Below are positions 1 to 64,000 of a DNA stretch of 64,000 bases, one piece after another; positions within the stretch are counted from its first letter, which is position 1, and each line of letters opens with the position of its first letter. The position numbers and the translations under genes are program-made. The stretch covers positions 1,798,001 through 1,862,000 of the forward strand of contig LSRY02000008.1 in NCBI GenBank assembly GCA_001643675.2. Reading direction: 5' to 3'. The notes below the pieces were generated by a model. That model made no database searches. It was not told the DNA's origin and was given only the letters and a program-made list of their open reading frames with translations. This stretch comes from Monocercomonoides exilis PA203 (lineage: Eukaryota; Protista; Preaxostyla).

Positions 1-330
1 CCCCATCATACACATCCCATACCAACACAAATTCACATCCACTCATCAGAAACACTCTTTGGCTCGGCCCTTCATCCAGATGTGTTATTTTTGGTGGATT
101 TGTGGAGATGTTGAAGAAGGTCAGTCGGGTGAGTGTCACAAGGCGTGTCAGAGGAGGTGCCAGAAACGGGGCTGAAGACACACAAAAAGATGAGAAATTC
201 GACTCACACACAAACACACTCCCACCTCCTTCACTTTCTTCTTCTCTTTCTTCTCCTCTTCCTTTTCCACCTCTTTCTTCACCACCTCGTTGTCCTCCTT
301 CATCCCTTCCTCTCCCAACCCCTCTCAATA
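1..330 (-). pseudogene. 5' part of another beta-helix cassette, running off the left edge
   Basis: Manual minus-strand translation gives GSVFVCESNFSSFCVSSAPFLAPPLTRLVTLTRLTFFNIST...LMSGCEF, then after a frameshift VWDVYDGG. This matches GSISVSESRFSSFCVSSAPFL...LTFFNIS...SVCDVYDGG in the 11646 ORF. Confidence 0.8.
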
Positions 331-2179
331 TTATTTTCATCATAATTCCAATACCCCTAAAACTCTTTTCCTTCCTTTTTCGCTGCTCATATAAAGTATC
401 TTGTTTAAAAAATGTGTAAAAGAACCTTCACTGCCAATGCCTTTTTATTATTAATGATCCTATAAAGCTCTTTCCCACGCTGATTCTGCTCATTGCCCTT
501 CACTTTCTATCGTCTGATCTTATTCTGCTTTTCCTCGCTGTTTTAGAAAACGCAAGCAAAAACAATTTTGTTCAAACAAATAGAAAGAAAAAACAATAAA
601 TCATATAAAAAATAGTCAAATAATATAATTAATAAAAATATCATACCTTTTTTATCCTTCAATCTTGCCAACTTTTGTCAAAGAATCACCGCATTCCTCG
701 CTTCCTCGTCCCTTCCGTTATCTCCCGCAAAAACAAACCCTTCTGAAATAGACGCGGAGTGTGACCTCTATCTTCAAGCCTTTTATTTTGATTAATATTC
801 CGAGGTATATTTCCATCTTCTTTTTAGAACTTTCTCCAAATTTTTGAATTATTTCCTCATAAAAGCCTCTCACATCAAGTTTTCTCTAAAATTCCTTTCT
901 CTTTCTTTTTCTTCTTTGTTAGGCACACTTTCTTTTCTTCTTCTCAATTATTTGTGCATGTTTTTTGTCTTTTCATCATTTTCCCATTCTCTCTTTTTGC
1001 TTTCAACCACATTTGTCCAGCACTCCTTCCAAAACCTTCAAAATTATCTTTCTTTCATTTCATTTCGCATTTCTCCTCCAGCTCACTCCTCTATGCGCCC
1101 CTTCATTTATTTCATCCAGACTTCTTTTATGCATTTTTAATCCTCTCTTTCCATATTCCATGTTCATTCATTTGCATAAAATATCTTTGCAAAAACCCTG
1201 ATTTCAACAAAAATAATATATGAAAAATCGTAATAAAAAAATATATATTCATGCCTTTTATAGCAACCCCCCTTCGCGACTTTTTTCTTTCTACTTTTCT
1301 AAATATTTCTCCGTTCTGCCAACAAAGCCCATCTTTCCCGCCTTCGCTTCTTTTCTGCTTCCTCAAATAAATATTAATCAAACCACAACCCTCTATTCTT
1401 CTTCCACTCAAATAACCTCCACAAACTCCATTCCATAAAAAACTGGTAAAGAAGAAGATTCCATCTGAATAACCCCTTCCCATCTCTTTTCGCAAAACCT
1501 CTTCTTCTTCTCTCCATTTCCCCCCAAAACAACAACAATACCACCACGCCAAATATCACAGTCCCTGTCTCCCCATCTCCCATTCCCCTTCTTCCAACCA
1601 AAAAAATATAAATATCTCCATCCTTTTTCTGTCTCTTTCCATTGCAAAACACCTCCCATAGTCAGCTCCTCATCTTCCTCTGTCTCCACACCTCCAATGC
1701 AAAGTGCCAGCGCTGATGTTCCTTCTTCCCGTCTTCCTCCGCATCCGCCTCCAACACTTGTCCTGCAAATGAGAGGCGCGGCCAAACGGTCCTTTCAATA
1801 AAAAATTAAAAAAGATTAAAAAAATATCTCTCACTTTTTTTTCCCCTTCAACCCCGCTTCCCTCTCTAATTATACACGCACTCACAAAAATTTTTCTTCT
1901 TGTTCCGCCTCATATGAGCCCTCCTCTCTCTCCCTGCATTTGAAAATAAATAACACCTCCTCCACATATCTCTCCATTTCTCGTCCTCTCCTCCAATAAA
2001 TATATTCCATTCACTCCACTCATTTTCGGCCCTTCTTGTTTTCCATCTTATCCCACCTTCTCAACAACAAATTCCTTTTCTCAAATAATAAACACTGCCT
2101 CAACACCTTCCCAATGATAAAAATCTCAAAAACAACCCCTCTAAATCTCATCCCTATCTATCCGCCACACATCCATTTT

Positions 2180-3400
2180 GCCTCTGAAATCTCACGAAAA
2201 CACCTCTTTTCCACAAAAAACATCCTTTTATCGCTCCTTTCCCCTTCGTAACCCTGCCCCTCCAAAAGCTCAGCTCCATCACCCCACACCAGAAATACAT
2301 ATTTTTTTAATCACATTGCCTTTATATGTCCATTCAGCCACAATGCATCGAGTAGGACTTTCTTTTCTTTTGTGGCCCTTATTCGTTATGGAAAATGATC
2401 AAGTTTTGCCAAATGCTCAGAAACTGTCAACGGGGTCAGATTCCGAAGCTAAAACAAAGACAGGTTGACTAAGTGAAATATTTCCAGTGAAAAGGTTGGG
2501 TATTACAAAAACAATATCTGTTTAATGGAAGATGAAATTGTTCATATTGATTGATGGAGAACTGTGAAGCAACAATATTTTCGATGGAAATGAAGAATTT
2601 TCAATGTATGTATTTTACATTGTGCTATATGTTGTGAAGATATTTCCATCCGTATCCTCTCCAAAGTCGTGATTCAGACAACTTATATAAAATGGACAAT
2701 TTATTCTATGCAGAGCAGAACAACGAGGAAGCGAGACAAATGTTACCTTACAAATATATTAGAGCCTGAATGTATTTTGTTACAAATGTTTATGTGACTT
2801 ATAATGGACTCAACATGCGCGATGTTTCGAAATGCGATGAAAAATGAATTTTGATGGAGCGGAAATGAACGGGGTTGGAAGACATCCAAGGCAAAAAGGA
2901 AGAACAGCCAATCTCTATGAAATGGGAGCACCATTTGAAGATGGCGGGGACATTTTCAAAAAATTTTGTTGAAGAGATTGGGACAAGTGACTGAAACAGG
3001 ACATTGGAGGCAATTGGAGCAGAACAAGGTGCCTTTCTTTGGAGAAGAAGGGCAAGACATTGATTTTATGGAACGAGGTGAAAGGGGTAGAATGGCACTT
3101 GATTGCTTGGGTTGAGGGGCGAAAATCCGAGAAATACAGACAATTTGGCGTGATGCAAGCAGCTGGAGGCAAATGATAGGCAAAATGGATTTGAGTCATT
3201 TTGCTATCGCATTAGGCATTGTGCCATCGAAGTATTTGCAACTGGAGCAGAGAACGAGATTGTTATGTTGAGGATATCTTCCAACAGAAAATTATCTTTC
3301 ATATGAAATTTCCTTAACATCTTATTCATCCTCTTCATCGTCTTCATTGTCTTCTTCAACTATTCCGTCTATTCTCCCCTTTCTTCTTCAGCCTTATTGT
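2180..3400 (+). pseudogene. Decayed gene relic of unknown family (copy 1 of relic X)
   Basis: Protein-like fragments (NLYEMGAPFEDGGDI, LKQDIGGNWSRTRCLS, EKYRQFG) broken by stops and frameshifts; inverted homolog at ~45600-47000 and a partial homolog at ~18250-18550. Confidence 0.45.
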
Positions 3401-4257
3401 TTTCATCACCAACATCGCAATCGTGTTTCCATATGCACCTCCAAATGATATGAAATCGTGTATTTTTCTCTTCACTTTTGATTATCACCTTCATCACCTT
3501 CATCACCTTCTGCAAATATTTATTCTTCATCGAATGCAACTAATTTTTATATTTCTTCATCATCTTCTTCACCATCATTGTTTTTGTATGCTCCTTTTCG
3601 GAAATTGAAATTATATGTCAATTTTATCCCTTCTTGGTCATTATCTTCTTCTTCTTCACCAAATCATTTTAATGGATTTTTATTATTTATGTGTTATTCG
3701 AGTGGAATCAGCGCCAAGAATTGGAAATAAGCAAATTTTTGGAAGCAGAACAGAATCACTTTCATTGATGTTGAGATTGGCAGCGGAGACAGATCAGCTG
3801 GATGTTGTTGGCAGAAAAGAACAATATTTTGAGAGGCACTCGAAGAAGAAGAAGAAAGTGTGTGAAGATTGGCGATAAATATATTTCAGAGTTTGTTTTG
3901 TATTATTTTTTTCCTCCAATTTTTCAAACATTTTATTTTTTTTTTGAGGGATTAAGATTTATGGAAGGACATTTTCAGGGAATGAATGAACATGGGGGAA
4001 AGAGCATGCTGGATGCTTTTCAGAAATCAGGCAATGACAATTTTTTTGAGAATATAGATGAATAAGCCAGAGGTTTTAAATGAAATGAATGGAAGAGGAG
4101 ACCTTTGAAGATTTATGTTAAATTTTGAAAAAGAAGAAGGCGAAGCGACGGAAAAGAATAATCGGAAAATTGAAGAAATGGCTGAAGAAGAAATGTGACA
4201 GGAAGTCAAGAAGGAAATGAAGATGAAGAAAAGGAAGCAGATTGCAAAAAGAAAATG

Positions 4258-4520: not shown

Positions 4521-5975
4521 GGAGGTGAAGATGGAAGCGTTTCGACATGCGAATCTCTTATCTCATCTTCAACAGCATTTCTTTCATCACCTTCCATACC
4601 CCTTGTATCCCTCTCTCACCTGTCATTTTTCAACATTTCAACAGCAAATGATGCATGCTTGCCTTCAACAACTACGTCAACCCAAACCACGTGTATGATG
4701 AACAGCTGCTCATTCTCATCAGTTTGTGACGTTTATGATAGCGGGATTGTTCATTCCCTCAACAACCCCTTGGCCTCTTTGACAGCTTCAAACACCTCAT
4801 TCATTGGATGCTGCCGGACAAGAAACGTTGTATGTGAAGGAACTTCAGATGGAAAGTTGAATCCAGGGAGGCAAAACATTACTGACAATGGACCGAATAC
4901 ATTCACTTGGTGCGAGTGGAACGGATCGAAAACAACAGGAAGCAGTGATTCATGGACGGATGGAGAATCGAGCGGAGGGGCAATCTGTGTGAATGGTTTA
5001 TCATCTGCCTCTGTGTCTGTTTCCCATTGTATATTTAATAATTGTTTTGCATACAGTCGTGGAGGGGGAATAATGTGCGCAAGCATAAAAGAAGTTAAAA
5101 TAGAGAACAACTCATTTAATGCATGCACAGCTCAGAATCATTATGGGGGTGGAATGCTTATTTATACGATTTCATCATGTGTTCTGATCAGCGATTGTGA
5201 ATTCCAGAATTGCAAAGCAAATAGCTATGGAGGTGGTCTTAATCTTAACAATTTTAATGTTTCAGGAACAGGATGCATCCCAACAGAAAATGGAGAAGGG
5301 GAGAGTGCGTGTGTGTTTGACTGCAGTTTCACTTCGTGCTCGGTTACAAATTATTACGGCGGAGGTATGTATTGTGCTGCTGTTCCAGTTGCATTCAAAA
5401 TGAGGAGCATGCAGTTTATCTCATGTTCAGCACGGCAAGAGGGCGGAGGAATGAGATTGTATCCAAACAGGCCAACAGCACCTGATGATGGAATCTATTG
5501 TTATTTCCTTTTCTTCCACGAGTGCAAATGTTATAACAACCCCTCTTACGGTCATGACGTTATGTATAATGATTACTACAGTGTCTTTTTATCTTCAGAC
5601 AATCCGTTCAAAGAATGCTACACCACAAACACAGATGACAAGAGAGTGTGCTATGCATACAATTATGCAAATGCAAGTGTTTGGTCTTATCAGCACACGG
5701 AAAAGAAGGATTGGCTGAAGGACAAGACGATATATGTTTCTGTGAATGGGAATGATACTACTCCACTTTGTGGGGCAAATACAACATATCCGTGTCTGAC
5801 AGTGAAGAAAGCGTTTGAGATGTGTGAGGTGCAGATTAGCTTGACAGTCACGCTGCTGGAAGGGAATCATGTGAGTGAGGCAACAACAGTTGAGATTGGG
5901 GAAAAGAAGATTTCAATCATTGGGACAGGCAAAGAGAAGAGTTCAATTAGAACAGGAGCGAATTTTAGCCGTTAA
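4521..5975 (+). CDS. Cassette A: Cys/Gly-rich parallel beta-helix variable domain (truncated; likely silent cassette)
   Basis: Open frame from 4521 (GGEDGSVSTCES...FFNIS) to the stop at 5975; repeated CxFxxC..GGG motifs and a CGANTTYPC cap; no signal peptide or TM. Confidence 0.8.
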   Translation, partial: GGEDGSVSTCESLISSSTAFLSSPSIPLVSLSHLSFFNISTANDACLPSTTTSTQTTCMMNSCSFSSVCDVYDSGIVHSLNNPLASLTASNTSFIGCCRTRNVVCEGTSDGKLNPGRQNITDNGPNTFTWCEWNGSKTTGSSDSWTDGESSGGAICVNGLSSASVSVSHCIFNNCFAYSRGGGIMCASIKEVKIENNSFNACTAQNHYGGGMLIYTISSCVLISDCEFQNCKANSYGGGLNLNNFNVSGTGCIPTENGEGESACVFDCSFTSCSVTNYYGGGMYCAAVPVAFKMRSMQFISCSARQEGGGMRLYPNRPTAPDDGIYCYFLFFHECKCYNNPSYGHDVMYNDYYSVFLSSDNPFKECYTTNTDDKRVCYAYNYANASVWSYQHTEKKDWLKDKTIYVSVNGNDTTPLCGANTTYPCLTVKKAFEMCEVQISLTVTLLEGNHVSEATTVEIGEKKISIIGTGKEKSSIRTGANFSR

Positions 5976-8900
5976 TCCTTCTCATCTTCTTCTGCTCATT
6001 TTATTTTCTTCATGCAATTTTTCTTCTAAAAATTGTTCCTTGGCTATTTCAATTCATTTCACTTCAACTTTAAATCTGCAAGCGTCTTATTTTCAATTTC
6101 CCTTCTCTTATTATTTTTGCCTGGCAAGATTTTGAGACAACGAAGAAGGAGGAGTAGAAAGATAGAGGTGGAGCACTTGGAGCTGCTAACTGTGAAGGTG
6201 CTGTCAAATGCTCATTTATAATCACTAACTTTTTGTAAATAATTTTTAAAATAACTTCTTCTTGGTCATCATCATCAACAACAACATCATCATCATCCAC
6301 TTCTCCTGATTCATCAGTTTTATCATCTCCTTCTATTTGTCGTTCAATACTTCTTCAATAATTACTTCTTTGCCTTCTTCGCCATTCTGATCTATTTATT
6401 GGAATCAAGTTGTTGAAGTTTTTGAATCAGGGAATCTGAGGACTGGACTTTGACTATTTTCTTTTCTTTCCTTTTGAGCAAAATGGGGAAAATGCTATTG
6501 GCATCGGGATCGCCGGCAGAGATGGAGCAGGCGGGTGTGTTAGCAAAAAGGAGCAATATTTAGAGGAGGAGGAGGAGGAGGAAAAGAAGAAGAAGAAACG
6601 ACGAATTGGAAAGAGTAAGCGAAAAAAAATTGAATAAAAAGGTTTATTGTATGTTTTGTTTTATTTTGTTTTATTTTTTTCTTGCACAAAGGTTATGCCT
6701 TGATGCTTATTTTTCTGATTTTCATATATTTCATAAATGATTTTATTTCGTTCATTTTTCTTGTATATTTGTATTGTTGTGTACTTGGAATTTTTTTACG
6801 AATGCCAATTAAAGCGATGAAAGAAAATGGATTTTTGAAAACAAGCAGAAGATTGCAACAGAAGAAAAAGGGATACGGGGAAAGCAGACGATGAAGAAGG
6901 GGCAGAAAAGATGGAAAAAGGGATGCGACCATGTTGAGGTATTTTGTGAAATTTCACCAAGAAGCATTGAGAAGAGAAGGAGGCAAAGAAAGAAGTGCTT
7001 CAGTGAGCGAACTGCATTTCTCTTTTTTCTGTATTTTTCTCTTCCAACATATTTTTTTTCAATATTTCAACAGCAAATGACGCATGTTCGTCTTCAACCA
7101 CTACGTCAACACAAATCACATGTTTGATGAATAGTTGCTTTTTCTCATCGGTCTGTGATGTGTATGATGGCGGGATTGTCCCTTCCCTCAACAATCCCTA
7201 TGCCTCTTTGTCTGTTTCAAACACCTCATTCGTTGGATGTTGCAGGGCAAGAAACGTTGAATGCATTGGAACTGCAGATAGAAAGTTGACTCCTGGGAGG
7301 CAGAACGAAACATTCAATGGAGCAAATTCATTTATTTGGTGCGAGTGGAACGGATCGAAGGCTGCTGAAATGAGCGAAGATTATTCAAAACAAGCCTCGA
7401 ATGGAGGAGCAATATTTATGTATGGCTTGACGTCTGGTTCACTTACAGTTTCGAATTGTTCATTCAACGACTGCTTGTCATATTATGGTGGAGGAGGGAT
7501 AATGTGCCACACGATCAAATCAGTGGGTATTGAAAGCAGCACTTTCAATTGTTGTGTCTCCACAAATCGATATGGAGGAGGTGTTTATTTGTATGGCATT
7601 TCTACTTGTGCTCGGGTGAGTGGATGCGAGTTCAAAAACTGTCAAGCGATTGATTATGGAGGAGGGTTAAAATTAGATAATTTTAATATTTCAGGGACAA
7701 GATGCATTTCAACAGAAAGTGGAGAAGGGGAGAGTGCGTGTGTGTTTGACTGCAGTTTCACATCATGTTCAGTTTCTGGCTCATGGGGAGGAGGTATGTA
7801 CTGTTATGGTGTTCCTAATCAATTCAAAATGAGGAGCATGCAGTTTATTTCATGTTCTGCAATGACAAGGGGAGGCGGATTTCATTTGGAGCCAGCAAAA
7901 CAAACAGCGCCAAATGAAACAATTTATTGCTATTTCCTCTTCTTCCATGAATGCAAATGCTTGGCCAATGTTCCATATGGTCACGATATGATATACTTAG
8001 ATTATTACAAAATCTTTTTGAATTCAGACAATCCTTTCTATGAATGTTACACCACAAACACAGATGACAAGAGAGTGTGCTATGCATACAATTATGCAAA
8101 TGCAAGTGTTTGGTCTTATCAGCACACGGAAAAGAAGGATTGGCTGAAGGACAAGACGATATATGTTTCTGTGAATGGGAATGATACTACTCCACTTTGT
8201 GGGGCAAATACAACATATCCGTGTCTGACAGTGAAGAAAGCGTTTGAGATGTGTGAGGTGCAGATTAGCTTGACAGTCACGCTGCTGGAAGGGAATCATG
8301 TGAGTGAGGCAACAACAGTTGAGATTGGGGAAAAGAAGATTTCAATCATTGGGACAGGCAAAGAGAAGAGTTCAATTAGAACAGGAGCGAATTTTAGCCG
8401 TTAATCCTTCTCATCTTCTTCTGCTCATTTTATTTTCTTCATGCAATTTTTCTTCTAAAAATTGTTCCTTGGCTATTTCAATTCATTTCACTTCAACTTT
8501 AAATCTGCAAGCGTCTTATTTTCAATTTCCCTTCTCTTATTATTTTTGCCTGGCAAGATTTTGAGACAACGAAGAAGGAGGAGTAGAAAGATAGAGGTGG
8601 AGCACTTGGAGCTGCTAACTGTGAAGGTGCTGTCAAATGCTCATTTATAATCACTAACTTTTTTGTAAATAATTTTTAAAATAACTTCTTCTTGGTCATC
8701 ATCATCAACAACAACATCATCATCATCCACTTCTCCTGATTCATCAGTTTTATCATCTCCTTCTATTTGTCGTTCAATACTTCTTCAATAATTACTTCTT
8801 TGCCTTCTTCGCCATTCTGATCTATTTATTGGAATCAAGTTGTTGAAGTTTTTTGAATCAGGGAATCTGAGGACTGGACTTTGACTATTTTCTTTTCTTT

Positions 8901-10519
8901 CCTTTTGAGCAAAATGGGGAAAATGCTATTGGCATCGGGATCGCCGGCAGAGATGGAGCAGGCGGGTGTGTTAGCAAAAAGGAGCAATATTTAGAGGAGG
9001 AGGAGGAGGAGGAAAAGAAGAAGAAGAAACGACGAATTGGAAAGAGTAAGCGAAAAAAAAATTGAATAAAAAGGTTTATTGTATGTTTTGTTTTATTTTG
9101 TTTTATTTTTTTCTTGCACAAAGGTTATGCCTTGATGCTTATTTTTCTGATTTTCATATATTTCATAAATGATTTTATTTCGTTCATTTTTCTTGTATAT
9201 TTGTATTGTTGTGTACTTGGAATTTTTTTACGAATGCCAATTAAAGCGATGAAAGAAAATGGATTTTTGAAAACAAGCAGAAGATTGCAACAGAAGAAAA
9301 AGGGATACGGGGAAAGCAGACGATGAAGAAGGGGCAGAAAAGATGGAAAAAGGGATGCGACCATGTTGAGGTATTTTGTGAAATTTCACCAAGAAGCATT
9401 GAGAAGAGAAGGAGGCAAAGAAAGAAGTGCTTCAGTGAGCGAACTGCATTTCTCTTTTTTCTGTATTTTTCTCTTCCAACATATTTTTTTTTCAATATTT
9501 CAACAGCAAATGACGCATGTTCGTCTTCAACCACTACGTCAACACAAATCACATGTTTGATGAATAGTTGCTTTTTCTCATCGGTCTGTGATGTGTATGA
9601 TGGCGGGATTGTCCCTTCCCTCAACAATCCCTATGCCTCTTTGTCTGTTTCAAACACCTCATTCGTTGGATGTTGCAGGGCAAGAAACGTTGAATGCATT
9701 GGAACTGCAGATAGAAAGTTGACTCCTGGGAGGCAGAACGAAACATTCAATGGAGCAAATTCATTTATTTGGTGCGAGTGGAACGGATCGAAGGCTGCTG
9801 AAATGAGCGAAGATTATTCAAAACAAGCCTCGAATGGAGGAGCAATATTTATGTATGGCTTGACGTCTGGTTCACTTACAGTTTCGAATTGTTCATTCAA
9901 CGACTGCTTGTCATATTATGGTGGAGGAGGGATAATGTGCCACACGATCAAATCAGTGGGTATTGAAAGCAGCACTTTCAATTGTTGTGTCTCCACAAAT
10001 CGATATGGAGGAGGTGTTTATTTGTATGGCATTTCTACTTGTGCTCGGGTGAGTGGATGCGAGTTCAAAAACTGTCAAGCGATTGATTATGGAGGAGGGT
10101 TAAAATTAGATAATTTTAATATTTCAGGGACAAGATGCATTTCAACAGAAAGTGGAGAAGGGGAGAGTGCGTGTGTGTTTGACTGCAGTTTCACATCATG
10201 TTCAGTTTCTGGCTCATGGGGAGGAGGTATGTACTGTTATGGTGTTCCTAATCAATTCAAAATGAGGAGCATGCAGTTTATTTCATGTTCTGCAATGACA
10301 AGGGGAGGCGGATTTCATTTGGAGCCAGCAAAACAAACAGCGCCAAATGAAACAATTTATTGCTATTTCCTCTTCTTCCATGAATGCAAATGCTTGGCCA
10401 ATGTTCCATATGGTCACGATATGATATACTTAGATTATTACAAAATCTTTTTGAATTCAGACAATCCTTTCTATGAATGTTACACCACAAACACAGATGA
10501 CAAGAGAGTGTGCTATGCA
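5619..10519 (+). repeat. Tandem direct duplication, unit ~2430 bp
   Basis: 5619-8047 is repeated at 8048-10480, differing only in homopolymer lengths as far as I can see; a 39 bp junction sequence occurs three times (5619, 8048, 10481). Confidence 0.95.
7124..8404 (+). CDS. Cassette B: chimeric beta-helix cassette (N-part = C, C-part = A)
   Basis: 426 aa ORF identical to C up to ECYTTNTDDKRVCYA and to A thereafter. Confidence 0.8.
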   Translation: MMNSCFFSSVCDVYDGGIVPSLNNPYASLSVSNTSFVGCCRARNVECIGTADRKLTPGRQNETFNGANSFIWCEWNGSKAAEMSEDYSKQASNGGAIFMYGLTSGSLTVSNCSFNDCLSYYGGGGIMCHTIKSVGIESSTFNCCVSTNRYGGGVYLYGISTCARVSGCEFKNCQAIDYGGGLKLDNFNISGTRCISTESGEGESACVFDCSFTSCSVSGSWGGGMYCYGVPNQFKMRSMQFISCSAMTRGGGFHLEPAKQTAPNETIYCYFLFFHECKCLANVPYGHDMIYLDYYKIFLNSDNPFYECYTTNTDDKRVCYAYNYANASVWSYQHTEKKDWLKDKTIYVSVNGNDTTPLCGANTTYPCLTVKKAFEMCEVQISLTVTLLEGNHVSEATTVEIGEKKISIIGTGKEKSSIRTGANFSR

Positions 10520-26156: not shown

Positions 26157-26213
<57 letters not shown>

Positions 26214-38354: not shown

Positions 38355-38411
<57 letters not shown>

Positions 38412-56100: not shown

Positions 56101-56207
56101 ATATTATTATTCTTTCTGATTTCTGAGCTTCATTCTCCCCTCCCTCACATCCTCCTTCGTTTTCTGAAGCAACCACAACTATATTATCTGCTCTGCTCAA
56201 CAGCCTT

Positions 56208-59200
56208 CTATCCCGCATCAAGCAATCCCATTTCAACAATATCCCAAACAATTTCTGATTTATCTTTTCTTTTCTGATTTCTCTTTTTCTTTTTCTTCCT
56301 CCTCTTCTGTTTCTCTTCACCTTTCGAACTTTCCTCACCATTCGTATATTTACCAACATCTGTCAATTTCCCCTCCTCTTCAAACCCTTTACCCTCTTTC
56401 ATCATTTCTTCTCCCTCGGTTTCTTTAGTGACCCTCCTTCTTTTTTCTGGAGCTCTTCCAATATCTTTTATGGCATTTTCCTCCTTCTCTCTTTCTTCTT
56501 CCATCATCCTCTTCATCCCTTGCTCTTCTGAATCCTCTCCAACCATCGAAAAATGGCTGTTTGGTGCTGAACATATCCCAATATAATATTCTGTCGGCTT
56601 TCCATTTCTTCCATCATCTGCAGCTGCAACCCCACCCAACTCCTCCAATCCAATCTCGGGTCCTCCCCTCTCATCCCCAATTTCATCAACCTCTTCCACT
56701 TTCTTCCATTTCTTCCCCTTCCTTCTCTTCCCCCTTTTCGCTTTTCTATCTCTTTTTCGCACATTCTCATCTTCCTTTCTTCTTGCATCAGTCTCTGTTC
56801 CTTCTTCCCCTCCACCGCCAAGAAGCGAAGCAACTGTTTGTATTTCAACATAATTCAATGGCACCACCTCGATCACTCCCTTGCAATCAAATCCACTCTC
56901 CACCATTTCTTTGTTCTCACACACCTTCAGCTCCTCACCTTTCTCTGTTGGCACTCCCATCACATTTCCCGTTTCTCTTGCCAATAATGTTTGCATCTCC
57001 CTCTCTTCTTCCTCAACTCTTTCTGCAACATCTTCTTTTCTCCATTCCCCTCTCCCAATATTCTTTGATTCTTCAATATCTCCATCTTCAACTCTCCGTC
57101 CTCCTCCATTCTGCTTCTTTCTCAGTTGCACAACAACCACAACAATCACAAATAACAGAATCACAATAATAACAATGCACCCAATAAATGCAATCAAACT
57201 CCATTCAATTTGTTCCTCTCCTTTTGATATTATTTCATCTCCTTTTGGTTCAGTTTCACTTTTGTTCTTCAGAATGAATGAATCTGTTGATGAAGGAGAT
57301 TCTGCATTTCCAAATAAAATATGCACACTCACTTCTGTTTCATCTTCATAACTGATGATAATATCTTTCGCAACTCTCCCTTCGACTTCTCTTTCTGATA
57401 AAAACCCATTAGAATCAAAATCATGTTTTTCAATCTCTTTCTCTTCTCCAAGACTCTTCACAACTGAGAATGACAGATTGCATGGAATAAGAAGCATTCC
57501 TTTGAACGTCAGCTTCATTCTATCTGTTGATTCTTTTGCTTCCACACTCTCCAGAACAGGAATGAAGAATGATGAATCTCTCTCTGAAGCAATCCCTTCA
57601 AAATTGCACCCTTCATTCAACATCCAAAGTGATGAATTTGGCAAAACTCCATCTCCTCCTTTCAAACTCATCACATTCAATGTTCCTGAATTTGAACAGA
57701 CGATATTCCTTCTCAGTGATGGATATCCTTCAATTGATGGATTGTTATTCAAAAATTCTCCTTTTTCAATTATCACATTTCCTCCACTCATTGTTATTCC
57801 TCCTTTTGGTGTATTTGATATTGTTGAAACTTTCATCACCACAGAACTCTTCACAACATCAACAAGAGATCCATCCCATCTGCACATCTCTTCTTCTGTA
57901 TTTGAATTCTTTTCATTTCTTTCCTTTGAACTCCCATCAAAAATACAACTGTCCATTTTCACATCTGTGCAATTCTCCATTTTCATCAATTTCCCTTTTG
58001 TGGTCTTTGAACTGACTCCACCCATTGTGCAATTTGCCAATTGCATCGTCTTTTTTATTGACAAGCAAGATATCAATGATTCTTCATTTCCTTCAACTGT
58101 GATATTTTCTGAATGAAACTTTTCCATTTTTAATTGTTCACATTCATTAATTTCAACAAGCGAATGAGAAACTGTTGAATTGAAAATCGTTAATGAATCA
58201 ATAACTGATGGAAGAGAAGATGAAAGATATAATGCAGATTTTTGAAGAATGAGATATGATATTGTGCATCCATCAAGTTGTAATTCTCCTTTTGTCATCT
58301 GAATGATGTGAAATGGAATGTTTGCAAAATCAGCATTAACTCCTTCCTTCAGTTGTTTTGAAGTGAACGAACAATCCATCACTTCAAGAATTCCTCCTTC
58401 TGGCGAGATCAGTGATTCGTGAGAAGAGATGAAATTCGAATCAAACACAAAGTTCACTTTCAATAATGAAACTTCTCCTGTTGTTGTGATCAATGTCTCT
58501 CTTGTTTTTTCAATTCCTGATTTCACTTCAACTTTGCACATCTCTCTGCTCTTCGAACTCAAACTCATTTCCTTCAAATCTAATTCTCCTTCAATCACGC
58601 TCTCTTTAGCAACGAACATCTGACTAATGAAATCAGAAGTCATATGCACCAGCCCATGATCAATCGAATCACATGGTAATGTGTTTGTTCCACATTGTCT
58701 GCCATTCGAACCATCAACACTGCTCACAACAATTGTGTCACTCTGATGAATCGTAATAAATCCAATCAGATTTGTATCATCTTTGTGTTCACAACTATCA
58801 ATTCCATAGATTGCATTAATTCGTGAGTAATGATTCTCACGAAGATCAAACTGAAATTGGCTTTCATTGATCTGCGATGTGATGTTGAAACATTCAATAT
58901 AAATGTCATTCCCCACTTTTGCTGTGTTTGAACTGAATTTCATTCCCACAAATGTGAAATTCAATTCTCCTCTTTCCTTTGTTGCCAGATACACCCCTCC
59001 TCCTTTCCCATTGGTGCAGCTGCAACGGCTGATTGTTGAATCAACCATCTTCATCGATCCAGATGCACCCAATGTGAAGAATATTGCCCCTCCTTTTTCA
59101 CTTGATTCTGCTTTGTCTTCTGTGATGTTGCTCTCATTCACAACCAAACAAATCTTTTTCTCACTCTTTGATTCCAAAATGCTTGCTCCATTGTCAGTTC

Positions 59201-62200
59201 TCTTCACTCCTGAAAATGATGATTTCTCAATCTTTATATTTGCTCCTTCTTTAATTTCTCCATTTATCCTTAATCCTTGTTCAGATTTCTTGATTGATAA
59301 AATGCATCCTCTGCTTTCATTTAACGACTCCACTCGAACATTCTTCAACTGGCAAGAAATTCCAACATCATGAATGACAAAAATACTGTTTCCAATATAG
59401 CATGATTCCATTGACAAATCATTCACTTCCACACTGCCCGCAATCACATCCACAAATACACAATCAAATCCATTGTTCGCTCCTGCCTCTGAATGGAATG
59501 AACTTTCACTTATCACCAATTCTCCATTTTTGTTGGAAATAATCGTTTTGGCTGAGTTCTCAAATCCAGATGTAAGTTGCAGTTGGATATTTATCAATTC
59601 AAAATGCTCATCATTTTCCATGATATATTCCAGTTGACTTCCAATTGCCTTTTCAAAATTCAATATTGCTTTTGTATCTTCCTCTCCCATCTTCACACCC
59701 TTTTTGATCTGATAATTGGAAACATTGAATGAATCTCGAATAATTGTTGATCCTTTAATCTGAATTGTTTTCATTCCACTTTCCTTTTTCATGTTTTCCA
59801 TCCCTTTCCACATTGTGAAGCATGGCTCTTCCTCACTTCCACAACGCGCCACATCAAATCCTTCTGATGAGATAAATATCTCAAATGAGCTGTATGGAAT
59901 CAGAAACACGAATAAATCCTTGTTTGAATGAAAGTTGTCACTTCCCACAAACAAATTACCATCATTTGTCATTGATGAATAATCGAAGGCAAATGTCTCA
60001 TTTGTCACGGTCTTGTTCAGATCAGATGCAAAAATGAATGCATTCTTTCCAATGGCTGCATTGTTATTCTTAAAAGTTACGTCAGCATCAAAAACAAATG
60101 GCTTCTCATTCAAACAATTTTGGCAATCCAAATACAAAAACCCTCCTTTTCCATTGCCTGATGAAAGTGAACACGATGATGCATTTGTTGATTTCATCAC
60201 CAATTCTTCTTCATTTTTTAATGTAACTTTTGCAACGCCTCCTTCTTCACCACTTCCAGTGTTCCTAATGTTTGAAAGGCTGCTGTTTTCAAATAAAACA
60301 GAAGAAGCCATCACCAATGGAGATTTGGAAAATGAGCAATCTGTCAAACTGCATCCCTTCAATGTGCAACTTCCAGTGGTTGTTGTTATCAACGAGTATG
60401 GAATGGTCGTTGATGATTGGATGTCAAACAAACAGTTTTCGAGTTGAAGAACCCCACTCGATGAGATCAGAGAATTCATATTTGGCTCAAATTGACTTGG
60501 AATCTGCAGCTTCAAAGATAACAAGCTGAGTGAGGCAGTTGACGTAATAACAGATGAAGATGATGATGCAGAATTCCCTTTGATTGTCCCTTCAAAATGA
60601 ACAGGCTTGTGTTGAACTTCATCTCCTTCATTCACACACCCATCAATCGCAAGTGCATCTGTGAAAGAATAAATATCTTCAATTGTCCCTTCATCCCTCA
60701 CTTTCACTTTCCTTTCTCCTTCCGCTCCACTTCTGTCAATGTGGCTTATTCCACTCCACATTGATTCACATGGATATCCATCGCTCCCACATCCCAATGT
60801 GTCATACCCCTCCTTCGACACACACACCTCCATTCCCTTCATTTCAACAAGAAACAGCCCAAGATCAACACTCTCTGCAAAATGCTCTCTGTCAATCCCT
60901 TTCATATCAACTGCCTGACCTTCTCCTTCTCCTTCTCCATTTTCATATTTGTATTCAAATCCAAACCTCTCCTTCGTCACTGTTTCATTCAGTTTCTTGC
61001 AAGAAATGAACAAATCCCTTCCCTCGGCAGCAACATTGCCTTCGAATGTCAATGTTGTCAACGCAAAGTTATTCACACAATTGTCACTCAAATCCAGATA
61101 TATTCCTCCTCCTCTTCCTCCATTTCCATTCGCCGAGCATCTCAATATGGATGATGATCCCATTTCAAGCAAATCATTCAGGTCCATCTCGCTCTTCACA
61201 CACCCTCCACTCACGCTTTCTGTCTCAATATTCTCAAATCTGCTTTCTCCATCAACCATCAAACTCGATCCTCCATTCGACGTTATCAGCGATCCTGCTC
61301 CCACAACACACCCCAATGCTGTCATGTTCCTCAATGTCACTTCCGATCCACCATTCCCCACTACCATTCCTCCTCCACTGGTCTCAATCCCACTCAATGA
61401 ACAGTTCTCAAATATCACATTCCCTCCTCCAAATCTTGCAATTCCACATTCTTCAAATCTTATCCCATTCATTTCTGTTCTCTCTATTCGAATAACTCCT
61501 CCATTCCCAATCACTATCCACTTCCCACACTCATTCACATTTGAATTCCCTTCTCCTCCTGAAAACAAACAATCTAAAATGAAACATTCCCCAATCCTCG
61601 CTTCCACAATCGATTCGTCACCACTTGCACTTGCAGAGGAGGAACATGGAAGCAAAATCTGAAGAAGTGACAAAGTCAAATGTGTTTGTCCATCTCCTTC
61701 TGTCAATTCAAATTTCCCTCCCTCTTCAACAACCAGCTGTTTCTTTTCTTTATTCCCTTCGATTGTCAGTCCTTTCCCACCTCTGTTGATAGTCTTGCTC
61801 ACTGAAGCAGCACCAACAAGCATAATCCTCTCTATCTCATCGTTCAATCGATCAAACCCAATATCAACAGAAAAGCAAGGTTTGACTTTCGCTCCACAAC
61901 TTGATAATTCGTTTCCAGAATTGCTCACAAACAAATCCGTTCCCAATCTTGGAAACAGATAATTGATCAGTGAGTCTTCTTTTCTTGGTTCAGATGACTC
62001 AAGCACCCACATCTTATTTTCTGCTGTGACTCTTGTGGCTGTCCCTTCCCACAACGCTGGAAGAAGCATCGTCCATGGTGATCCGCACACCAAATACACA
62101 TCTTCTCCTTTTTCTGCAACATTGTTCGCAAAATCATCATTCTTCATAGAGTATTCAATATTCGTTGTTTCAAATGTCAGATGCAACCCTCCTCCTTTTC

Positions 62201-64000
62201 CACTTCTATCTGAAACTGTGCATCCATTCATCTTGTTTTCATCAAACAACAGTTTTCCTCCATCTCCCACAATCATAACAACCCCTCCCCCAATTGCGCT
62301 CACTGAATTGCATTTGCATTCCTCAAACACGCATTTGTTAATATCCACACACTTCCCATTCCCCGCTCTCCCATTCAACACCCCTCCATTCCCACTGCCT
62401 CTCTGAATTGATTTGAATGTGCAGTTCCAGATTTTTGCATTAATCCCTTCTCCAATCTCAATCTCATTTCCATCATCAAAACGAGATTCATTCATCGTTG
62501 TGTTCTTAATCTCAACATCTCCTCCATTTCTCAGCTCAAATAAGCTTCTTCCCTCATTTTCTCTTGTCACATTCCTCACAATCACCTCATCAATCAATCC
62601 TCCAACCCCTGCTCCATCAAAAGTCACCATCCCTAATTTGGTCATTCGGATATTTTCAAATTCACAATTTGTCAACTCCACTTTCCCTCCTTTCCCGCAA
62701 ATCAATCCCACACCAATACTTTCTGATTCTGCTCCAAATGAACATCCTTCAAATCTCAATGTGCTTGAACTGCACAAAAATACACACTCCTTTCTTGATT
62801 CGGCAAATGTTGATATCGAAAATGACAATGATGAAAACGATATTGCTCGTTCGCTCTTTATCAAAAATTCATTTTCTCCTCCTTCGACAATTCCAATCTT
62901 TGCCTTTGAAATATCTCCATCAATGTTCATTTCTTGAGTGTTGAGTGTCATTTCATCGAAAATAGAACTTCCATCGACAAGTTTCAGTGCTGCTGGCGAT
63001 GTACCAAAAACACTTGTTCCCGCATATGTCAATGTGGAGCATGGAAAGTCAGCATATCCGCACTTATGATAGTCCATCCCTCCATTCCCCCCATTCACAT
63101 ACCCAACACTCGGCTTCTCTCGAAAGAACACCACAACTGGAATCAATTTCAACTCATTCCCATCTTCTGCTCCCATAAGATCTTTTATGTTGAATCCTTC
63201 GCCTTCAATCTCAAATGAGAAGTCAAATGAAACATTATTCACCAACTGTGGCAAATCTGCTCCTTCAACAAACACATTGTTTCCTCCATGTGCCGCAGTG
63301 TTTGCTCTGTCTCCTTCTAAAAATGTCAATCCACTCATCACAAAGTCCCTTCCTCCTTCCTCGCATCTCAACAACACTCCTCCTCCATATCCCCCAACTG
63401 ATCCCTCACCACCAGCTGAACATTTCTCAAACGATGTAACCACTCCACTCTTCCCCAAACGCATTTCTCCTGTTCCCTTCAATATCACACTCATCCCTCC
63501 TCCACATCCCTTCAATGTTCCACATCCTTCAATCACAACATCATTCACCTCAACAGAACATCCATTTCCAACTTCTCCACTCACAACACTCCCATTTCCC
63601 TCCAAACTGCTCATCTTCATAATCGTGCAATTCCTCATCCCCAGCTTCTTTCCATTTTCATCCCATATCAGTCCTTTCCCTCCCATCACACATTCTTGTG
63701 CTGTCACATTCACAATCGTCAATGAACTCGATGATGATGAATAATCAATCAATCCCTTCATATTTGTTGTTTCCACATTCTCAAGCAAGGAATCCCCAAT
63801 CGAAGCCTCTCCGCTCCCTTCAGCAACAATGAATGCCTTCAATCCAAATTTCACATGAGTCATACTAAAACCTGAAATGGATAATGTCCCTCCACTTGCA
63901 CTCACAAACTTATAATTCGCAGAATCCACTCCGTTCCCCATCTTCATCCCACAATCAGCAAATCTCAATGTGCCTCCTGAAGAATGAACAAATGATGATC
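56208..64000 (-). CDS. Giant multi-module beta-helix type-I membrane (surface) protein, 5' end beyond the window
   Basis: >2590 aa uninterrupted frame, open to the window edge; five CGxxxxPC-capped modules with GGG/GGA motifs; TM helix WSLIAFIGCIVIIVILLFVIVVVVV (~57128-57203) followed by RKKQ and a ~300 aa charged tail. Confidence 0.92.
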   Translation of the reverse strand, partial: SSFVHSSGGTLRFADCGMKMGNGVDSANYKFVSASGGTLSISGFSMTHVKFGLKAFIVAEGSGEASIGDSLLENVETTNMKGLIDYSSSSSSLTIVNVTAQECVMGGKGLIWDENGKKLGMRNCTIMKMSSLEGNGSVVSGEVGNGCSVEVNDVVIEGCGTLKGCGGGMSVILKGTGEMRLGKSGVVTSFEKCSAGGEGSVGGYGGGVLLRCEEGGRDFVMSGLTFLEGDRANTAAHGGNNVFVEGADLPQLVNNVSFDFSFEIEGEGFNIKDLMGAEDGNELKLIPVVVFFREKPSVGYVNGGNGGMDYHKCGYADFPCSTLTYAGTSVFGTSPAALKLVDGSSIFDEMTLNTQEMNIDGDISKAKIGIVEGGENEFLIKSERAISFSSLSFSISTFAESRKECVFLCSSSTLRFEGCSFGAESESIGVGLICGKGGKVELTNCEFENIRMTKLGMVTFDGAGVGGLIDEVIVRNVTRENEGRSLFELRNGGDVEIKNTTMNESRFDDGNEIEIGEGINAKIWNCTFKSIQRGSGNGGVLNGRAGNGKCVDINKCVFEECKCNSVSAIGGGVVMIVGDGGKLLFDENKMNGCTVSDRSGKGGGLHLTFETTNIEYSMKNDDFANNVAEKGEDVYLVCGSPWTMLLPALWEGTATRVTAENKMWVLESSEPRKEDSLINYLFPRLGTDLFVSNSGNELSSCGAKVKPCFSVDIGFDRLNDEIERIMLVGAASVSKTINRGGKGLTIEGNKEKKQLVVEEGGKFELTEGDGQTHLTLSLLQILLPCSSSASASGDESIVEARIGECFILDCLFSGGEGNSNVNECGKWIVIGNGGVIRIERTEMNGIRFEECGIARFGGGNVIFENCSLSGIETSGGGMVVGNGGSEVTLRNMTALGCVVGAGSLITSNGGSSLMVDGESRFENIETESVSGGCVKSEMDLNDLLEMGSSSILRCSANGNGGRGGGIYLDLSDNCVNNFALTTLTFEGNVAAEGRDLFISCKKLNETVTKERFGFEYKYENGEGEGEGQAVDMKGIDREHFAESVDLGLFLVEMKGMEVCVSKEGYDTLGCGSDGYPCESMWSGISHIDRSGAEGERKVKVRDEGTIEDIYSFTDALAIDGCVNEGDEVQHKPVHFEGTIKGNSASSSSSVITSTASLSLLSLKLQIPSQFEPNMNSLISSSGVLQLENCLFDIQSSTTIPYSLITTTTGSCTLKGCSLTDCSFSKSPLVMASSVLFENSSLSNIRNTGSGEEGGVAKVTLKNEEELVMKSTNASSCSLSSGNGKGGFLYLDCQNCLNEKPFVFDADVTFKNNNAAIGKNAFIFASDLNKTVTNETFAFDYSSMTNDGNLFVGSDNFHSNKDLFVFLIPYSSFEIFISSEGFDVARCGSEEEPCFTMWKGMENMKKESGMKTIQIKGSTIIRDSFNVSNYQIKKGVKMGEEDTKAILNFEKAIGSQLEYIMENDEHFELINIQLQLTSGFENSAKTIISNKNGELVISESSFHSEAGANNGFDCVFVDVIAGSVEVNDLSMESCYIGNSIFVIHDVGISCQLKNVRVESLNESRGCILSIKKSEQGLRINGEIKEGANIKIEKSSFSGVKRTDNGASILESKSEKKICLVVNESNITEDKAESSEKGGAIFFTLGASGSMKMVDSTISRCSCTNGKGGGVYLATKERGELNFTFVGMKFSSNTAKVGNDIYIECFNITSQINESQFQFDLRENHYSRINAIYGIDSCEHKDDTNLIGFITIHQSDTIVVSSVDGSNGRQCGTNTLPCDSIDHGLVHMTSDFISQMFVAKESVIEGELDLKEMSLSSKSREMCKVEVKSGIEKTRETLITTTGEVSLLKVNFVFDSNFISSHESLISPEGGILEVMDCSFTSKQLKEGVNADFANIPFHIIQMTKGELQLDGCTISYLILQKSALYLSSSLPSVIDSLTIFNSTVSHSLVEINECEQLKMEKFHSENITVEGNEESLISCLSIKKTMQLANCTMGGVSSKTTKGKLMKMENCTDVKMDSCIFDGSSKERNEKNSNTEEEMCRWDGSLVDVVKSSVVMKVSTISNTPKGGITMSGGNVIIEKGEFLNNNPSIEGYPSLRRNIVCSNSGTLNVMSLKGGDGVLPNSSLWMLNEGCNFEGIASERDSSFFIPVLESVEAKESTDRMKLTFKGMLLIPCNLSFSVVKSLGEEKEIEKHDFDSNGFLSEREVEGRVAKDIIISYEDETEVSVHILFGNAESPSSTDSFILKNKSETEPKGDEIISKGEEQIEWSLIAFIGCIVIIVILLFVIVVVVVQLRKKQNGGGRRVEDGDIEESKNIGRGEWRKEDVAERVEEEEREMQTLLARETGNVMGVPTEKGEELKVCENKEMVESGFDCKGVIEVVPLNYVEIQTVASLLGGGGEEGTETDARRKEDENVRKRDRKAKRGKRRKGKKWKKVEEVDEIGDERGGPEIGLEELGGVAAADDGRNGKPTEYYIGICSAPNSHFSMVGEDSEEQGMKRMMEEEREKEENAIKDIGRAPEKRRRVTKETEGEEMMKEGKGFEEEGKLTDVGKYTNGEESSKGEEKQKRRKKKKKRNQKRKDKSEIVWDIVEMGLLDAG

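Follow-up and report, generated by a model that had tools for sequence, protein, structure and literature searches.

A palindrome-rich array of open, doubly truncated beta-helix cassettes in Monocercomonoides exilis and its possible role as a sequence reservoir for giant receptors

The window (the whole stretch of DNA that was analysed, 64 kb long) lies on contig C80 of the gut flagellate Monocercomonoides exilis and is a palindrome-rich array of headless, tailless, still readable copies of an outermost receptor domain, with the 3' part of a giant membrane-protein gene at its right end. For this window, a tblastn search with the giant protein and a 2,917-aa relative as queries found 11 complete cassettes and one cut by the window start, which matches the 12 counted in the first-pass annotation. 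The features are, in order:

1-343, minus strand (match 343 to 2): edge cassette, first 114 aa of a 629-aa annotated model; giant-gene subfamily
933-3510, no strand: non-coding flank upstream of the edge cassette, inverted and 80.7% identical to 45623-48248, the flank upstream of cassette 11
4539-5975, plus strand: cassette 1 (homology span 4539-5954)
5226-10519, plus strand: tandem repeat, 2.2 copies of a 2,429-bp unit at 96.4% identity, with boundaries inside cassettes
7112-8404, plus strand: cassette 2, chimeric (homology span 7112-8383)
9449-10975, plus strand: cassette 3 (homology span 9449-10816)
11676-13163, plus strand: cassette 4 (with C14/C26 queries; otherwise 11922-13124)
21107-22795, plus strand: cassette 5 (homology span 21107-22783), containing a palindrome outer end (~22417)
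22417-32210, plus strand: palindrome left arm, with the 3' part of cassette 5 and cassettes 6 and 7
26665-28032, plus strand: cassette 6 (ORF 26803-28014), mirror twin of cassette 9
27158-27171, plus strand: patch of 5 substitutions in 14 nt relative to the mirror copy at 37397-37410
29310-30781, plus strand: cassette 7 (homology span 29310-30754), mirror twin of cassette 8
32211-32357, no strand: palindrome centre spacer, unique, 147 bp
32358-42147, minus strand: palindrome right arm, with cassettes 8 and 9 and the 3' part of cassette 10
33786-35258, minus strand: cassette 8 (homology span 33813-35258), intact, 477 aa
36536-37903, minus strand: cassette 9, mirror twin of cassette 6
41769-43442, minus strand: cassette 10 (homology span 41781-43442), containing a palindrome outer end
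48545-50011, plus strand: cassette 11 (homology span 48632-49978), 3' arm of the same type as in cassette 3
56208-64000, minus strand: giant gene, C-terminal 2,596 codons of a single-ORF membrane protein of 4,299 aa in total

The array that spans the window occupies ~0.7-0.8 Mb of C80, cassette-filled arrays are also present on contigs C53, C71 and C42, and the domain motif was counted 519 times genome-wide, every homologue being an M. exilis protein. The public annotation lists the cassettes as genes for proteins of 316-705 aa, and their models in the window are plain single-exon ORFs. One cassette locus reads identically in the gene sets of 2016 and 2021, which favours a stable archive and is silent on its use. 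Several cassettes have peculiarities of their own: cassette 1 has a mirror twin outside the window (C80:1786454-1787659); the 3' arm shared by cassettes 3 and 11 is of a second type (RGILNRFVAVSGG...CGLDESSAC); cassette 4 alone extends further upstream, as far as residue 182 of a full-length relative, and its 3' end is the shortest; in cassette 6 the upstream conserved 5' arm (26580-26750) is degraded and out of frame; and cassette 7 carries a 1-nt frameshift near 30117 that is absent from its mirror twin.

The open frame of the giant gene runs past the window to 69161 (4,317 codons, 4,299 aa from the first Met). Of the eight beta-helix modules in the protein, five are encoded inside the window, together with a TM helix and a low-complexity tail, and the CG-x(4-5)-[PA]C motif occurs 5 times in this part, as the first-pass annotation had claimed for its cap motif, and 8 times in the whole protein. 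That annotation had also pointed past base 64000 for the N-terminus of the gene, and there (64001-69161) a signal-like peptide is indeed followed by the cassette domain, at residues ~127-597. The giant gene belongs to a different subfamily from the neighbouring cassettes (~50% aa identity), so their adjacency looks incidental. The family to which it belongs comprises more than 100 complete giant type-I membrane proteins of 2,500-4,300 aa, which are dispersed (over many contigs, with no fewer than 144 long proteins of the family and dozens of open frames longer than 2,000 aa), and no dedicated expression site was recognised among these complete genes. In full-length family genes the cassette domain is membrane-distal, and this Cys-rich module is extracellular in every full-length relative. 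Most full-length relatives carry a kinase-like tail (PF07714), for which the giant gene of the window gave no match; in two tails that were scanned only the C-lobe matches PF07714 (profile positions 161-258 of 258), suggesting that the tails may be pseudokinases. The text of two papers on these kinase-bearing genes was found to say nothing of giant ectodomains with a beta-helix, arrays of truncated cassettes, palindromes or mosaic genes, and to contain none of the wording palindrom-, pseudogene, surface protein, beta-helix or antigenic.

The domain is predicted to fold as a right-handed three-faced beta-helix. Its AlphaFold model has a core pLDDT of 85-96, and VIA-align superposed 220-260 residues (Z 17-18, rmsd 3.6-4.2) on tailspikes, alginate epimerases and a pectate lyase; Foldseek alone returned nothing significant. 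Protein-language-model neighbours were the Chlam_PMP (PF02415), DUF1565 (PF07602) and Beta_helix (PF13229) families, a few paralogues have a precomputed PF13229 match, and a Pfam search of two window cassettes at E up to 1 gave no match, Chlam_PMP included.

Cassettes cover only residues ~214/252 to 628-845 of the full-length proteins (the module itself being residues ~215-700). In homology searches the window cassettes left the N-terminal 180-250 aa and the stalk unmatched, save for the one that reaches residue 182, and a TM-like segment was found in 0 of 120 annotated cassette models compared with 104 of 120 full-length models, in line with the earlier reading that the cassettes lack a signal peptide and TM. 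The homology ends at or soon past the CGANxxxPC motif (residue 629 of the reference), which bears out the earlier proposal that they stop at the start of the next module. Both ends are heterogeneous, with the frame entering unrelated sequence before its stop, and many cassettes start at a conserved Met just ahead of the domain, a residue that is internal in full-length genes. In a comparison of 20 full-length genes, a variable block (residues 302-622) lies between conserved arms, at 222-301 and beyond 623; the cassettes span both arms and the block of ~320 aa, whose variable positions immediately precede the GGG turn in every helix rung. Over their first ~220 residues full-length proteins vary still more than in the block, and no cassette holds that region. 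A variable core between two conserved arms is the layout that would be expected of a conversion donor.

Duplication has shaped the array with breakpoints inside the cassettes, both by inverted (palindromic) and by tandem growth. The palindrome arms, of ~9.8 kb, are 99.9% identical (over 9.76 kb they differ by 11 substitutions and 8 single-base indels), unitigs from two sequencing runs bridge the centre (32152-32416 and 32168-32400) with 42-58 nt of each arm and no mismatch, and dozens of further mirror pairs lie mid-contig on several contigs. The human Y chromosome carries ampliconic palindromes with multi-kb inverted arms ~99.9% identical, a short unique spacer and members of multi-copy gene families. 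The M. exilis palindrome resembles these in arm identity, in its short unique spacer and in its multi-copy family content, but its arms hold truncated cassettes and end inside cassettes, and they may simply be young. The mirror version of the 14-nt patch at 27158-27171 was found exactly (21 nt) in a cassette pair on C71, and we therefore read the patch as a short-tract conversion. Through the tandem repeat, whose boundaries fall inside cassettes, cassette 2 is a chimera of the 5' part of cassette 3 and the 3' part of cassette 1.

Cassettes also swap tracts, ~20-1,000 bp in length, through either ectopic gene conversion or unequal crossing-over. Exact common tracts of 176, 245, 357 and 975 nt were found in cassette pairs otherwise 70-78% identical, far exceeding the column-permuted expectation (pair p = 0 of 200 permutations), and the exchange among cassettes that the first reading had noticed is thereby confirmed. 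Cassettes 1 and 2 share 357 nt (5619-5975 and 8048-8404), an island of 176 nt in cassette 5 (21649-21824) is identical to cassette 10, and a 245-nt tract is common to cassettes 8 (34689-34933), 11 (48957-49201) and 7. Genome-wide, pairs below 80% identity share identical runs of up to 100 aa, and 54% of 20-aa cassette windows have a near-exact match in another cassette.

Cassettes are under purifying selection equal to that on the domain in full-length genes, and their variable sites follow the same pattern. Among cassettes dN/dS is 0.24, equal to that of full-length genes, at a dS of ~1; ~92-99% of copies are stop-free inside the domain, with a few carrying 1-3 stops or a frameshift, and the correlation between the per-site entropy of cassettes and that of full-length genes is r = 0.94. 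Simulated neutral substitution of 5% is enough to close 98.5% of frames, and open frames at this dS and dN/dS rule out neutral decay as their source. The nearest neighbour of a cassette is another cassette in 92 of 101 cases; with full-length genes, the best identity of a cassette has a median of 73%.

In the full-length genes the block has a history of its own. Pairs with 85-92% identical stalks have tips that are only 50-65% identical (r = 0.22), and block dS is several-fold to ~100-fold above that of the flanks. For two genes on C91, dS is 0.15-0.27 upstream of the block, 0.67-1.34 within it and 0.01-0.4 downstream, and their blocks fall in different cassette subfamilies. By these comparisons the block shows itself as an independently inherited mosaic unit, with an ancestry much older than that of its flanks. 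Links to cassettes are also visible: one cassette has ~160 nt at 97-98% in common with a gene on C7 and ~210 nt at 93-98% with a gene on C14, and cassette 2 has a 105-nt tract at 96% in common with a full-length gene on C21. Of 526 cassette/full-length pairs, 8 have a common tract that is no shorter than 100 nt and no less than 96% identical. In the 15 cassettes (among several hundred) whose DNA was compared, such tracts measured 100-190 nt at 95-98% and none was exact. For the full-length blocks examined there was no exact or near-exact donor, the best non-self matches being 74% and 88%. Near-exact matches in 101 cassettes were found for 18% of 20-aa windows of full-length blocks, against 3.5% under a linkage-broken null, and these blocks match cassettes no better than they match other full-length genes (18% vs 15.5%). 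As the complete genes number more than 100, the tips could owe their diversity to exchange among full-length genes alone.

We hypothesise that the array consists of truncated, selected tip-domain cassettes serving as a sequence reservoir for the full-length receptors, a reading to which we give a probability of roughly one half. The cassettes would be "functional pseudogenes", from which full-length receptor genes would, over evolutionary time, receive segments in their ligand-facing tips, and copying would probably also run back, from full-length genes to cassettes. The first-pass annotation had proposed the cassettes as donors for the distal domain of giant surface proteins, and this stands in part. 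The distal position in full-length genes, the double truncation of cassettes that are kept open with a variable block between arms, the greater age of that block than its flanks and the shared tracts of 100-190 bp are all compatible with it; the dispersal of the complete genes in place of one or a few expression sites, the different subfamily of the adjacent giant gene, the lack of an exact donor and the equally good matches among full-length genes do not support it. A donor reservoir for the tip domain is plausible but unproven.

Other explanations have to be weighed against such a reservoir. The cassettes could be genes themselves, each encoding a short beta-helix protein that stands alone, in the cytosol or exported by an unconventional route, and is itself the target of purifying selection, with tract exchange as ordinary family dynamics. 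Their open frames with dN/dS of 0.24, the conserved Met ahead of the domain in many of them, their annotation as proteins of 316-705 aa and a variable-site pattern as structured as that of full-length genes would all fit. We nevertheless consider this unlikely, since a module that is Cys-rich and extracellular in all full-length relatives would here have neither signal peptide nor anchor, the ends are heterogeneous and read into unrelated sequence, the same Met is found internally in full-length genes, some cassettes have an out-of-frame 5' arm and the gene models are bare ORFs. The selection that speaks for stand-alone genes weighs in turn against the arrays being non-functional by-products of runaway palindromic or tandem duplication, in which damage is overwritten by constant conversion, whether from other copies or from intact genes. 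Stops cannot be purged by conversion among equally unselected copies, the simulated closure of 98.5% of frames after 5% neutral change is at odds with dS ~1 and dN/dS of 0.24, and variable and invariant sites coincide with those of full-length genes. Moreover, cassettes are ~27% off the nearest full-length gene in protein, which indicates that intact genes are not overwriting them. This too we regard as improbable, even with palindromes and tandem repeats that break inside cassettes, the very intense mosaicism (54% of 20-aa windows), the copies with 1-3 stops or a frameshift and the 28.9 Mb of the genome classed as "unclassified repeat" overlapping kinase genes.

A strict programmed high-frequency switching as in vlsE, msp2 or VSG, with one or few expressed genes rewritten somatically from silent cassettes, is suggested by the arm-flanked variable core, the double truncation, the clustered arrays and the very recent micro-conversion in the palindrome arm. 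The more than 100 complete dispersed genes with no recognisable expression site, the full-length genes examined with no exact donor tracts, the other subfamily of the neighbouring giant gene and the life of M. exilis as a gut commensal kept in culture make it very unlikely, and nothing indicates either a single expression site or rapid programmed switching. An assembly artefact, with palindromes and near-identical copies arising from Nanopore fold-back, collapse or polishing errors, is the explanation to which we give least credence, next to none. The assembly is ONT-based with ten rounds of Pilon polishing, the arm differences include single-base indels, and the checking runs come from the same sample as the assembly; against this, unitigs of two runs cross the unique 147-bp centre with no mismatch, 66-68% of the words sampled from a 10-kb cassette stretch recur in 2016 runs of that sample, dozens of mirror pairs lie mid-contig on several contigs, and the cassettes are diverged paralogues, not collapsed copies.

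Among the closest known systems are the "functional pseudogenes" of Anaplasma msp2/p44 (PMC2789410, PMC11946796) and the silent cassettes of Borrelia vls (PMC11499132): there too, many clustered copies are missing both ends of the expressed gene, have a hypervariable core set between conserved arms, stay open and exchange segments. Those systems use one expression site, with expressed segments identical to donors and unidirectional transfer (PMC2789410, PMC11946796, PMC11499132), whereas M. exilis, a eukaryotic gut commensal, has more than 100 complete genes, full-length tracts only 95-98% identical, giant receptors with a kinase-like tail and palindromes with 10-kb arms. More generally, the doubly truncated archive and the arm-flanked core of vlsE, msp2/p44, pilE/pilS and mosaic VSG are present in M. 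exilis, and their one or few dedicated expression sites have no recognised counterpart there. The Trypanosoma brucei VSG archive is also eukaryotic, with hundreds of incomplete copies in arrays and a surface-exposed domain, and its mosaic VSGs are assembled from several partly similar donors (PMC3708902). VSG members are, however, mostly damaged pseudogenes, while the M. exilis cassettes are more than 90% open; VSGs have telomeric expression sites and 70-bp repeats (PMC3708902), neither seen here, and the M. exilis mosaics are known from their sequence. Chlamydial Pmp and trichomonad Pmp/BspA are, like the present family, large paralogous beta-helical surface families with Gly-rich rung motifs, and the trichomonad families are, like the cassettes, found in metamonad protists (PMC10715098, PMC11166332, PMC6701047). 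The M. exilis motif is a Cys-framed xxGGG rung, in contrast to GGA(I/L/V)/FxxN in Pmp. To our knowledge, no truncated-cassette archive accompanies the Pmp/BspA families.

A stronger form of the reservoir hypothesis can be put forward, tentatively and as something we would bet against: several hundred open, putatively unexpressed cassettes in self-correcting palindromes would actively diversify the tips of more than 100 giant receptor pseudokinases, with copying frequent enough for selection to keep the archive readable. If true, this would be a repertoire generator for solenoid receptors in a mitochondrion-less gut commensal, unlike the immune-evasion device of a pathogen.

The structural description of the array is secure. 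By tblastn of the window (G000:C80:1798001-1862000, on contig C80 of an 82.3-Mb assembly in 101 contigs), with the giant membrane protein and a 2,917-aa relative as queries, we recovered 11 full cassettes and a twelfth cut at the window start, matching the 12 paralogous copies of one domain counted in the first-pass annotation. On full-length proteins, the giant membrane-anchored members of the family, all of them align from residue ~214/252 to residue 628-845. The first 180-250 residues of those proteins (a signal-like peptide plus a highly variable N-terminal stretch) are present in no window cassette, and neither are the stalk, the transmembrane (TM) helix or the tail; a TM-like segment was found in none of the annotated cassette models versus 104 of 120 long family members, so the absence of signal peptide and anchor noted from the sequence was borne out. 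Cassette homology stops at or shortly past the motif CGANxxxPC, which opens the next module, as had been proposed, and this motif occurs five times in the window part of the giant gene, the number first reported, and eight times in the whole protein. In the window no upstream exon proved homologous to a full-length N-terminus, apart from an extension of cassette 4 into the pre-domain region, which matches 16 full-length genes and is missing from the other window cassettes. We rejected a splicing model in which each cassette would supply a variable first exon to a constant region: cassettes occur in both orientations and without a signal peptide, and no constant exons are found in their vicinity. 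The frame of cassette 7 is broken by a single-base indel at 30117 (mirror position ~34451), while its mirror twin, cassette 8, is intact; the assembly is Nanopore-based (PMC8767320), and the indel may be a genuine lesion or an error left over from assembly.

The predicted fold of the cassette domain is a right-handed beta-helix. An AlphaFold model built with 39 paralogues has a confident core of short stacked strands (pLDDT 85-96 at residues ~70-260). Pfam gave no match for the window cassettes and Foldseek against the PDB no significant match for the cassette model; it was VIA-align that subsequently revealed the likeness to right-handed parallel beta-helices (tailspikes, alginate epimerases, pectate lyase), with Z of 17-18 over 220-260 residues, and the nearest families in a language-model search were Chlam_PMP, DUF1565 and Beta_helix. 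Variability is highest at the 2-3 residues right before each invariant GGG turn, plus a few after it, and the variable columns sit within a fixed frame of cysteines, glycines and hydrophobic residues.

The giant gene beside the array could be followed beyond the window, and it carries the following features:
56208-64000 (minus strand), window part of the giant gene; its frame remains open past base 64000 up to 69161 (4,317 codons, protein of 4,299 aa)
56208-57400 (minus strand), cytoplasmic tail after the TM helix, ~310 aa with many E, K, G and R residues and without a kinase match
The protein starts with a hydrophobic signal-like peptide and has the cassette domain at residues ~127-597, which is where the first-pass annotation had suggested looking for it. 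No kinase domain was found in the giant gene and no kinase exon downstream of it; a kinase-like tail is usual in the family, unlike the tail of this gene. Its adjacency to the cassettes looks incidental, since it has only about 50% identity to them and its closest relatives, at about 80% at the DNA level, are on two other contigs (C41 and C42).

Three complete relatives (2,917-3,119 aa) have a common layout.
Layout of complete relatives, from N to C terminus
signal-like N-terminus
variable region of about 215-270 aa
cassette domain
stalk of internally repeated modules
one TM helix
tail of 300-450 aa
The family includes at least 144 proteins of 1,400-4,300 aa, most of them with PF07714. In the two tails that were scanned (L004:1941-3320 and L002:2625-3701) the kinase profile matched in its C-lobe only (positions 161-258 of 258), so the receptors may be pseudokinases. 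The full-length receptor genes belong to the 'tyrosine kinase-like' family reported as the largest of the M. exilis genome and as overlapping its 'unclassified repeats' (PMC6759080, PMC8767320); palindromes, pseudogenes, surface proteins and beta-helices gave no hit in term searches of these two papers, and a literature search was likewise empty. The protein homologues found were throughout M. exilis entries named 'uncharacterized protein MONOS_...', apart from weaker relatives in another oxymonad, Streblomastix strix (2 of the 10 relatives looked up), whose match is confined to the repeated rungs of the domain. As a DNA pattern, the motif DGGIV has 519 matches in the genome and its reversed control none. 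Domain copies in open frames of ~465-825 aa cluster on C80 (1.18-1.86 Mb), C53, C71 and C42, and those in frames of 2,500-3,100 aa lie scattered. For one stalk group the full-length genes show strong clustering: of the 30 best matches, C26 holds at least 13 loci and C21 at least 12.

We found evidence that selection acts on the cassettes. Their dN/dS is 0.24 at dS of about 1, equal to that among full-length genes and between both classes, and the domain is free of stops in 92-99% of the best genomic copies (roughly 100 for each search), whereas in simulation a 5% random substitution closes 98.5% of such frames. The cassettes are not decaying. Nor are they fresh copies of intact genes, since the nearest neighbour is another cassette for 92 of 101 cassettes (median aa identity 79%) and the best match of these 101 to any of 85 full-length domains has a median of only 73%. 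Per-site entropy profiles of cassettes and full-length genes are correlated at r = 0.94. Frames that are open at this divergence, in fragments that are not fresh copies and vary at the same sites as full-length genes, therefore indicate that something selects on the coding content of fragments that have neither signal peptide nor anchor.

Full-length genes themselves are mosaics, and precisely at this domain. In a comparison of 82 long proteins, tip (cassette domain) identity is only 50-65% in pairs with 85-92% stalk identity, and the two identities are poorly correlated (r = 0.22). In two genes on contig C91, 95 kb apart, dS is 0.15-0.27 in the first 250 codons, 0.67-1.34 in codons 250-600 and 0.01-0.4 afterwards, and their tip blocks fall in different cassette subfamilies. 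Such a limitation of high synonymous divergence to the block implies an ancestry separate from that of its flanks, and points to recombination rather than to faster protein evolution.
Mean aa identity by region across 20 genes of one stalk group
residues 61-221: 0.26-0.46
residues 222-301: 0.71-0.75
residues 302-622: 0.53-0.64
residues beyond 623: climbing from 0.70 to 0.90
Residues 61-221 are the most variable part of the full-length genes (loci L027-L056), with third codon positions near saturation. Cassettes reach from the conserved island across the variable block into the beginning of the conserved stalk, the layout to be expected of a conversion donor.

The earlier claim that cassettes swap DNA tracts was upheld by exact tracts of hundreds of bases in diverged pairs and by the chimeric cassette 2, in which 7112-8086 is identical to 9545-10519 (cassette 3) and 8048-8404 to 5619-5975 (cassette 1), within a 2.2-copy tandem repeat with a unit of 2,429 bp. 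Cassette 11 has 245 exact bases in common with cassettes 7 and 8 at an overall identity of 77%, cassettes 5 and 10 have 176 exact bases in common outside the palindrome, and genome-wide identical runs reach 100 aa in cassette pairs below 80% identity. The palindrome consists of:
22417-32210, first arm
147-bp spacer
32358-42147, second arm, inverted
Over 9.76 kb the arms show 11 substitutions and 8 single-base indels relative to each other, and 5 of the 11 substitutions are packed into 14 nt of the mirror twins, cassettes 6 and 9. The cassette 9 version of this patch has an exact 21-nt match in a mirror cassette pair on C71, and the patch is an ectopic conversion of a short stretch that took place after the palindrome had formed. 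The outer ends fall inside cassettes 5 and 10. Recent conversion replacing the 5' parts of these cassettes was rejected, no exact donor being found for the diverged parts (best 82% and 76%), and this, together with the position of the ends, means that the arms probably arose via recombination or template switching between cassettes that were inverted and had already diverged, the palindrome end being the junction formed between them. Unitigs of two runs cross the palindrome centre without mismatch; these runs and the assembly share one sample, which makes the support less than fully independent. Many equal-score mirror pairs exist elsewhere in the genome, and cassette 1 has an identical-score mirror twin 16 kb upstream, outside the window (C80:1786454-1787659), which makes it probable that a second palindrome has its centre about 2.8 kb ahead of base 1 of the window and that the window's left end (1-~6000) forms its right arm.

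Neither a transposase nor any other gene was found in the spacers, whose open frames belong to no Pfam family and which hold no tRNAs, and capture by a mobile element thus has no support. The spacers and flanks contain:
19453-19897, 15-bp tandem repeat TTCTTCATCTCCATC, nearly perfect (98% matches over 29.7 copies), within the 8-kb spacer that separates cassettes 4 and 5, yielding long low-complexity open frames on both strands
44740-44958, GA-rich tandem repeats with units of 9 and 27 bp in the spacer on the upstream side of cassette 11
933-3510 and 45623-48248, 2.6-kb non-coding flank, inverted, 80.7% identity, upstream of two cassettes of different subfamilies
Shorter upstream flanks of 400-800 bp are common to several other cassettes at 70-72%. 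Either the duplicated unit extends beyond the cassette or the flank has its own role.

Cassettes and full-length genes do appear to exchange segments, with traces that are not fresh. One cassette (C80:1204973) has about 160 nt in common with a gene on C7 at 97-98%, about 210 nt with a gene on C14 at 93-98% and about 350 nt with a 1,075-aa copy on C14 at 97%, against a background identity of 60-75% in these pairs.
Pairs sharing a tract (100 nt or longer, 96% identity or more), among pairs of at most 85% overall identity (DNA of 15 cassettes and 37 long genes)
cassette and cassette: 7 of 100
cassette and full-length: 8 of 526
full-length and full-length: 22 of 646
At the protein level (20-aa windows, at least 19 of 20 matching, 101 cassettes), 18% of full-length block windows were matched in some cassette versus 3.5% in a linkage-broken null, about as many as were matched in other full-length genes (15.5%), and 54% of cassette windows were matched in other cassettes. 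No near-exact donor was found for the full-length blocks examined (best non-self matches 74% and 88%). At one locus, the 2016 and 2021 protein sets differ in gene model only.

We consider it most likely, with a probability of about one half, that the cassettes are a selected reservoir of tip variants that would trade segments with full-length genes over evolutionary time, because this explains open frames without export or anchor signals, the conserved arms that flank the variable block and the separate ancestry of that block. The proposal that cassettes donate tracts to the N-terminal domain of giant surface proteins, as in vlsE, msp2 and VSG, thus stands in part: the conserved-arm layout, the block's ancestry and the 93-98% tracts in common with full-length genes favour it, and the lack of a near-exact donor in the blocks examined speaks against it. 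The more than 100 complete genes and the lack of exact donor tracts make a strict switching system like that of vlsE or VSG unlikely. Cassettes acting as stand-alone proteins, and cassettes as unselected by-products of duplication, are serious rival readings, both less likely than the reservoir and equal to each other in probability.

To our knowledge, nearly all described archives of truncated donor cassettes belong to antibody-evading pathogens. M. exilis is a commensal flagellate and a model for life without mitochondria, and although the layout is alike, here it concerns the outermost domain of a huge receptor-like family in a commensal. Even if the archive is unused, several hundred fragments open at dS of about 1, chains of palindromes with 10-kb arms that break inside cassettes, and separate ancestries of tip and stalk are all unusual and, as far as the literature was searched, undescribed. 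If the archive is used, cassette-based diversification would be a general route to receptor repertoires in microbial eukaryotes, would probably account for part of the genome's 28.9 Mb of 'unclassified repeats', and would offer a tractable case of selection on unexpressed DNA.
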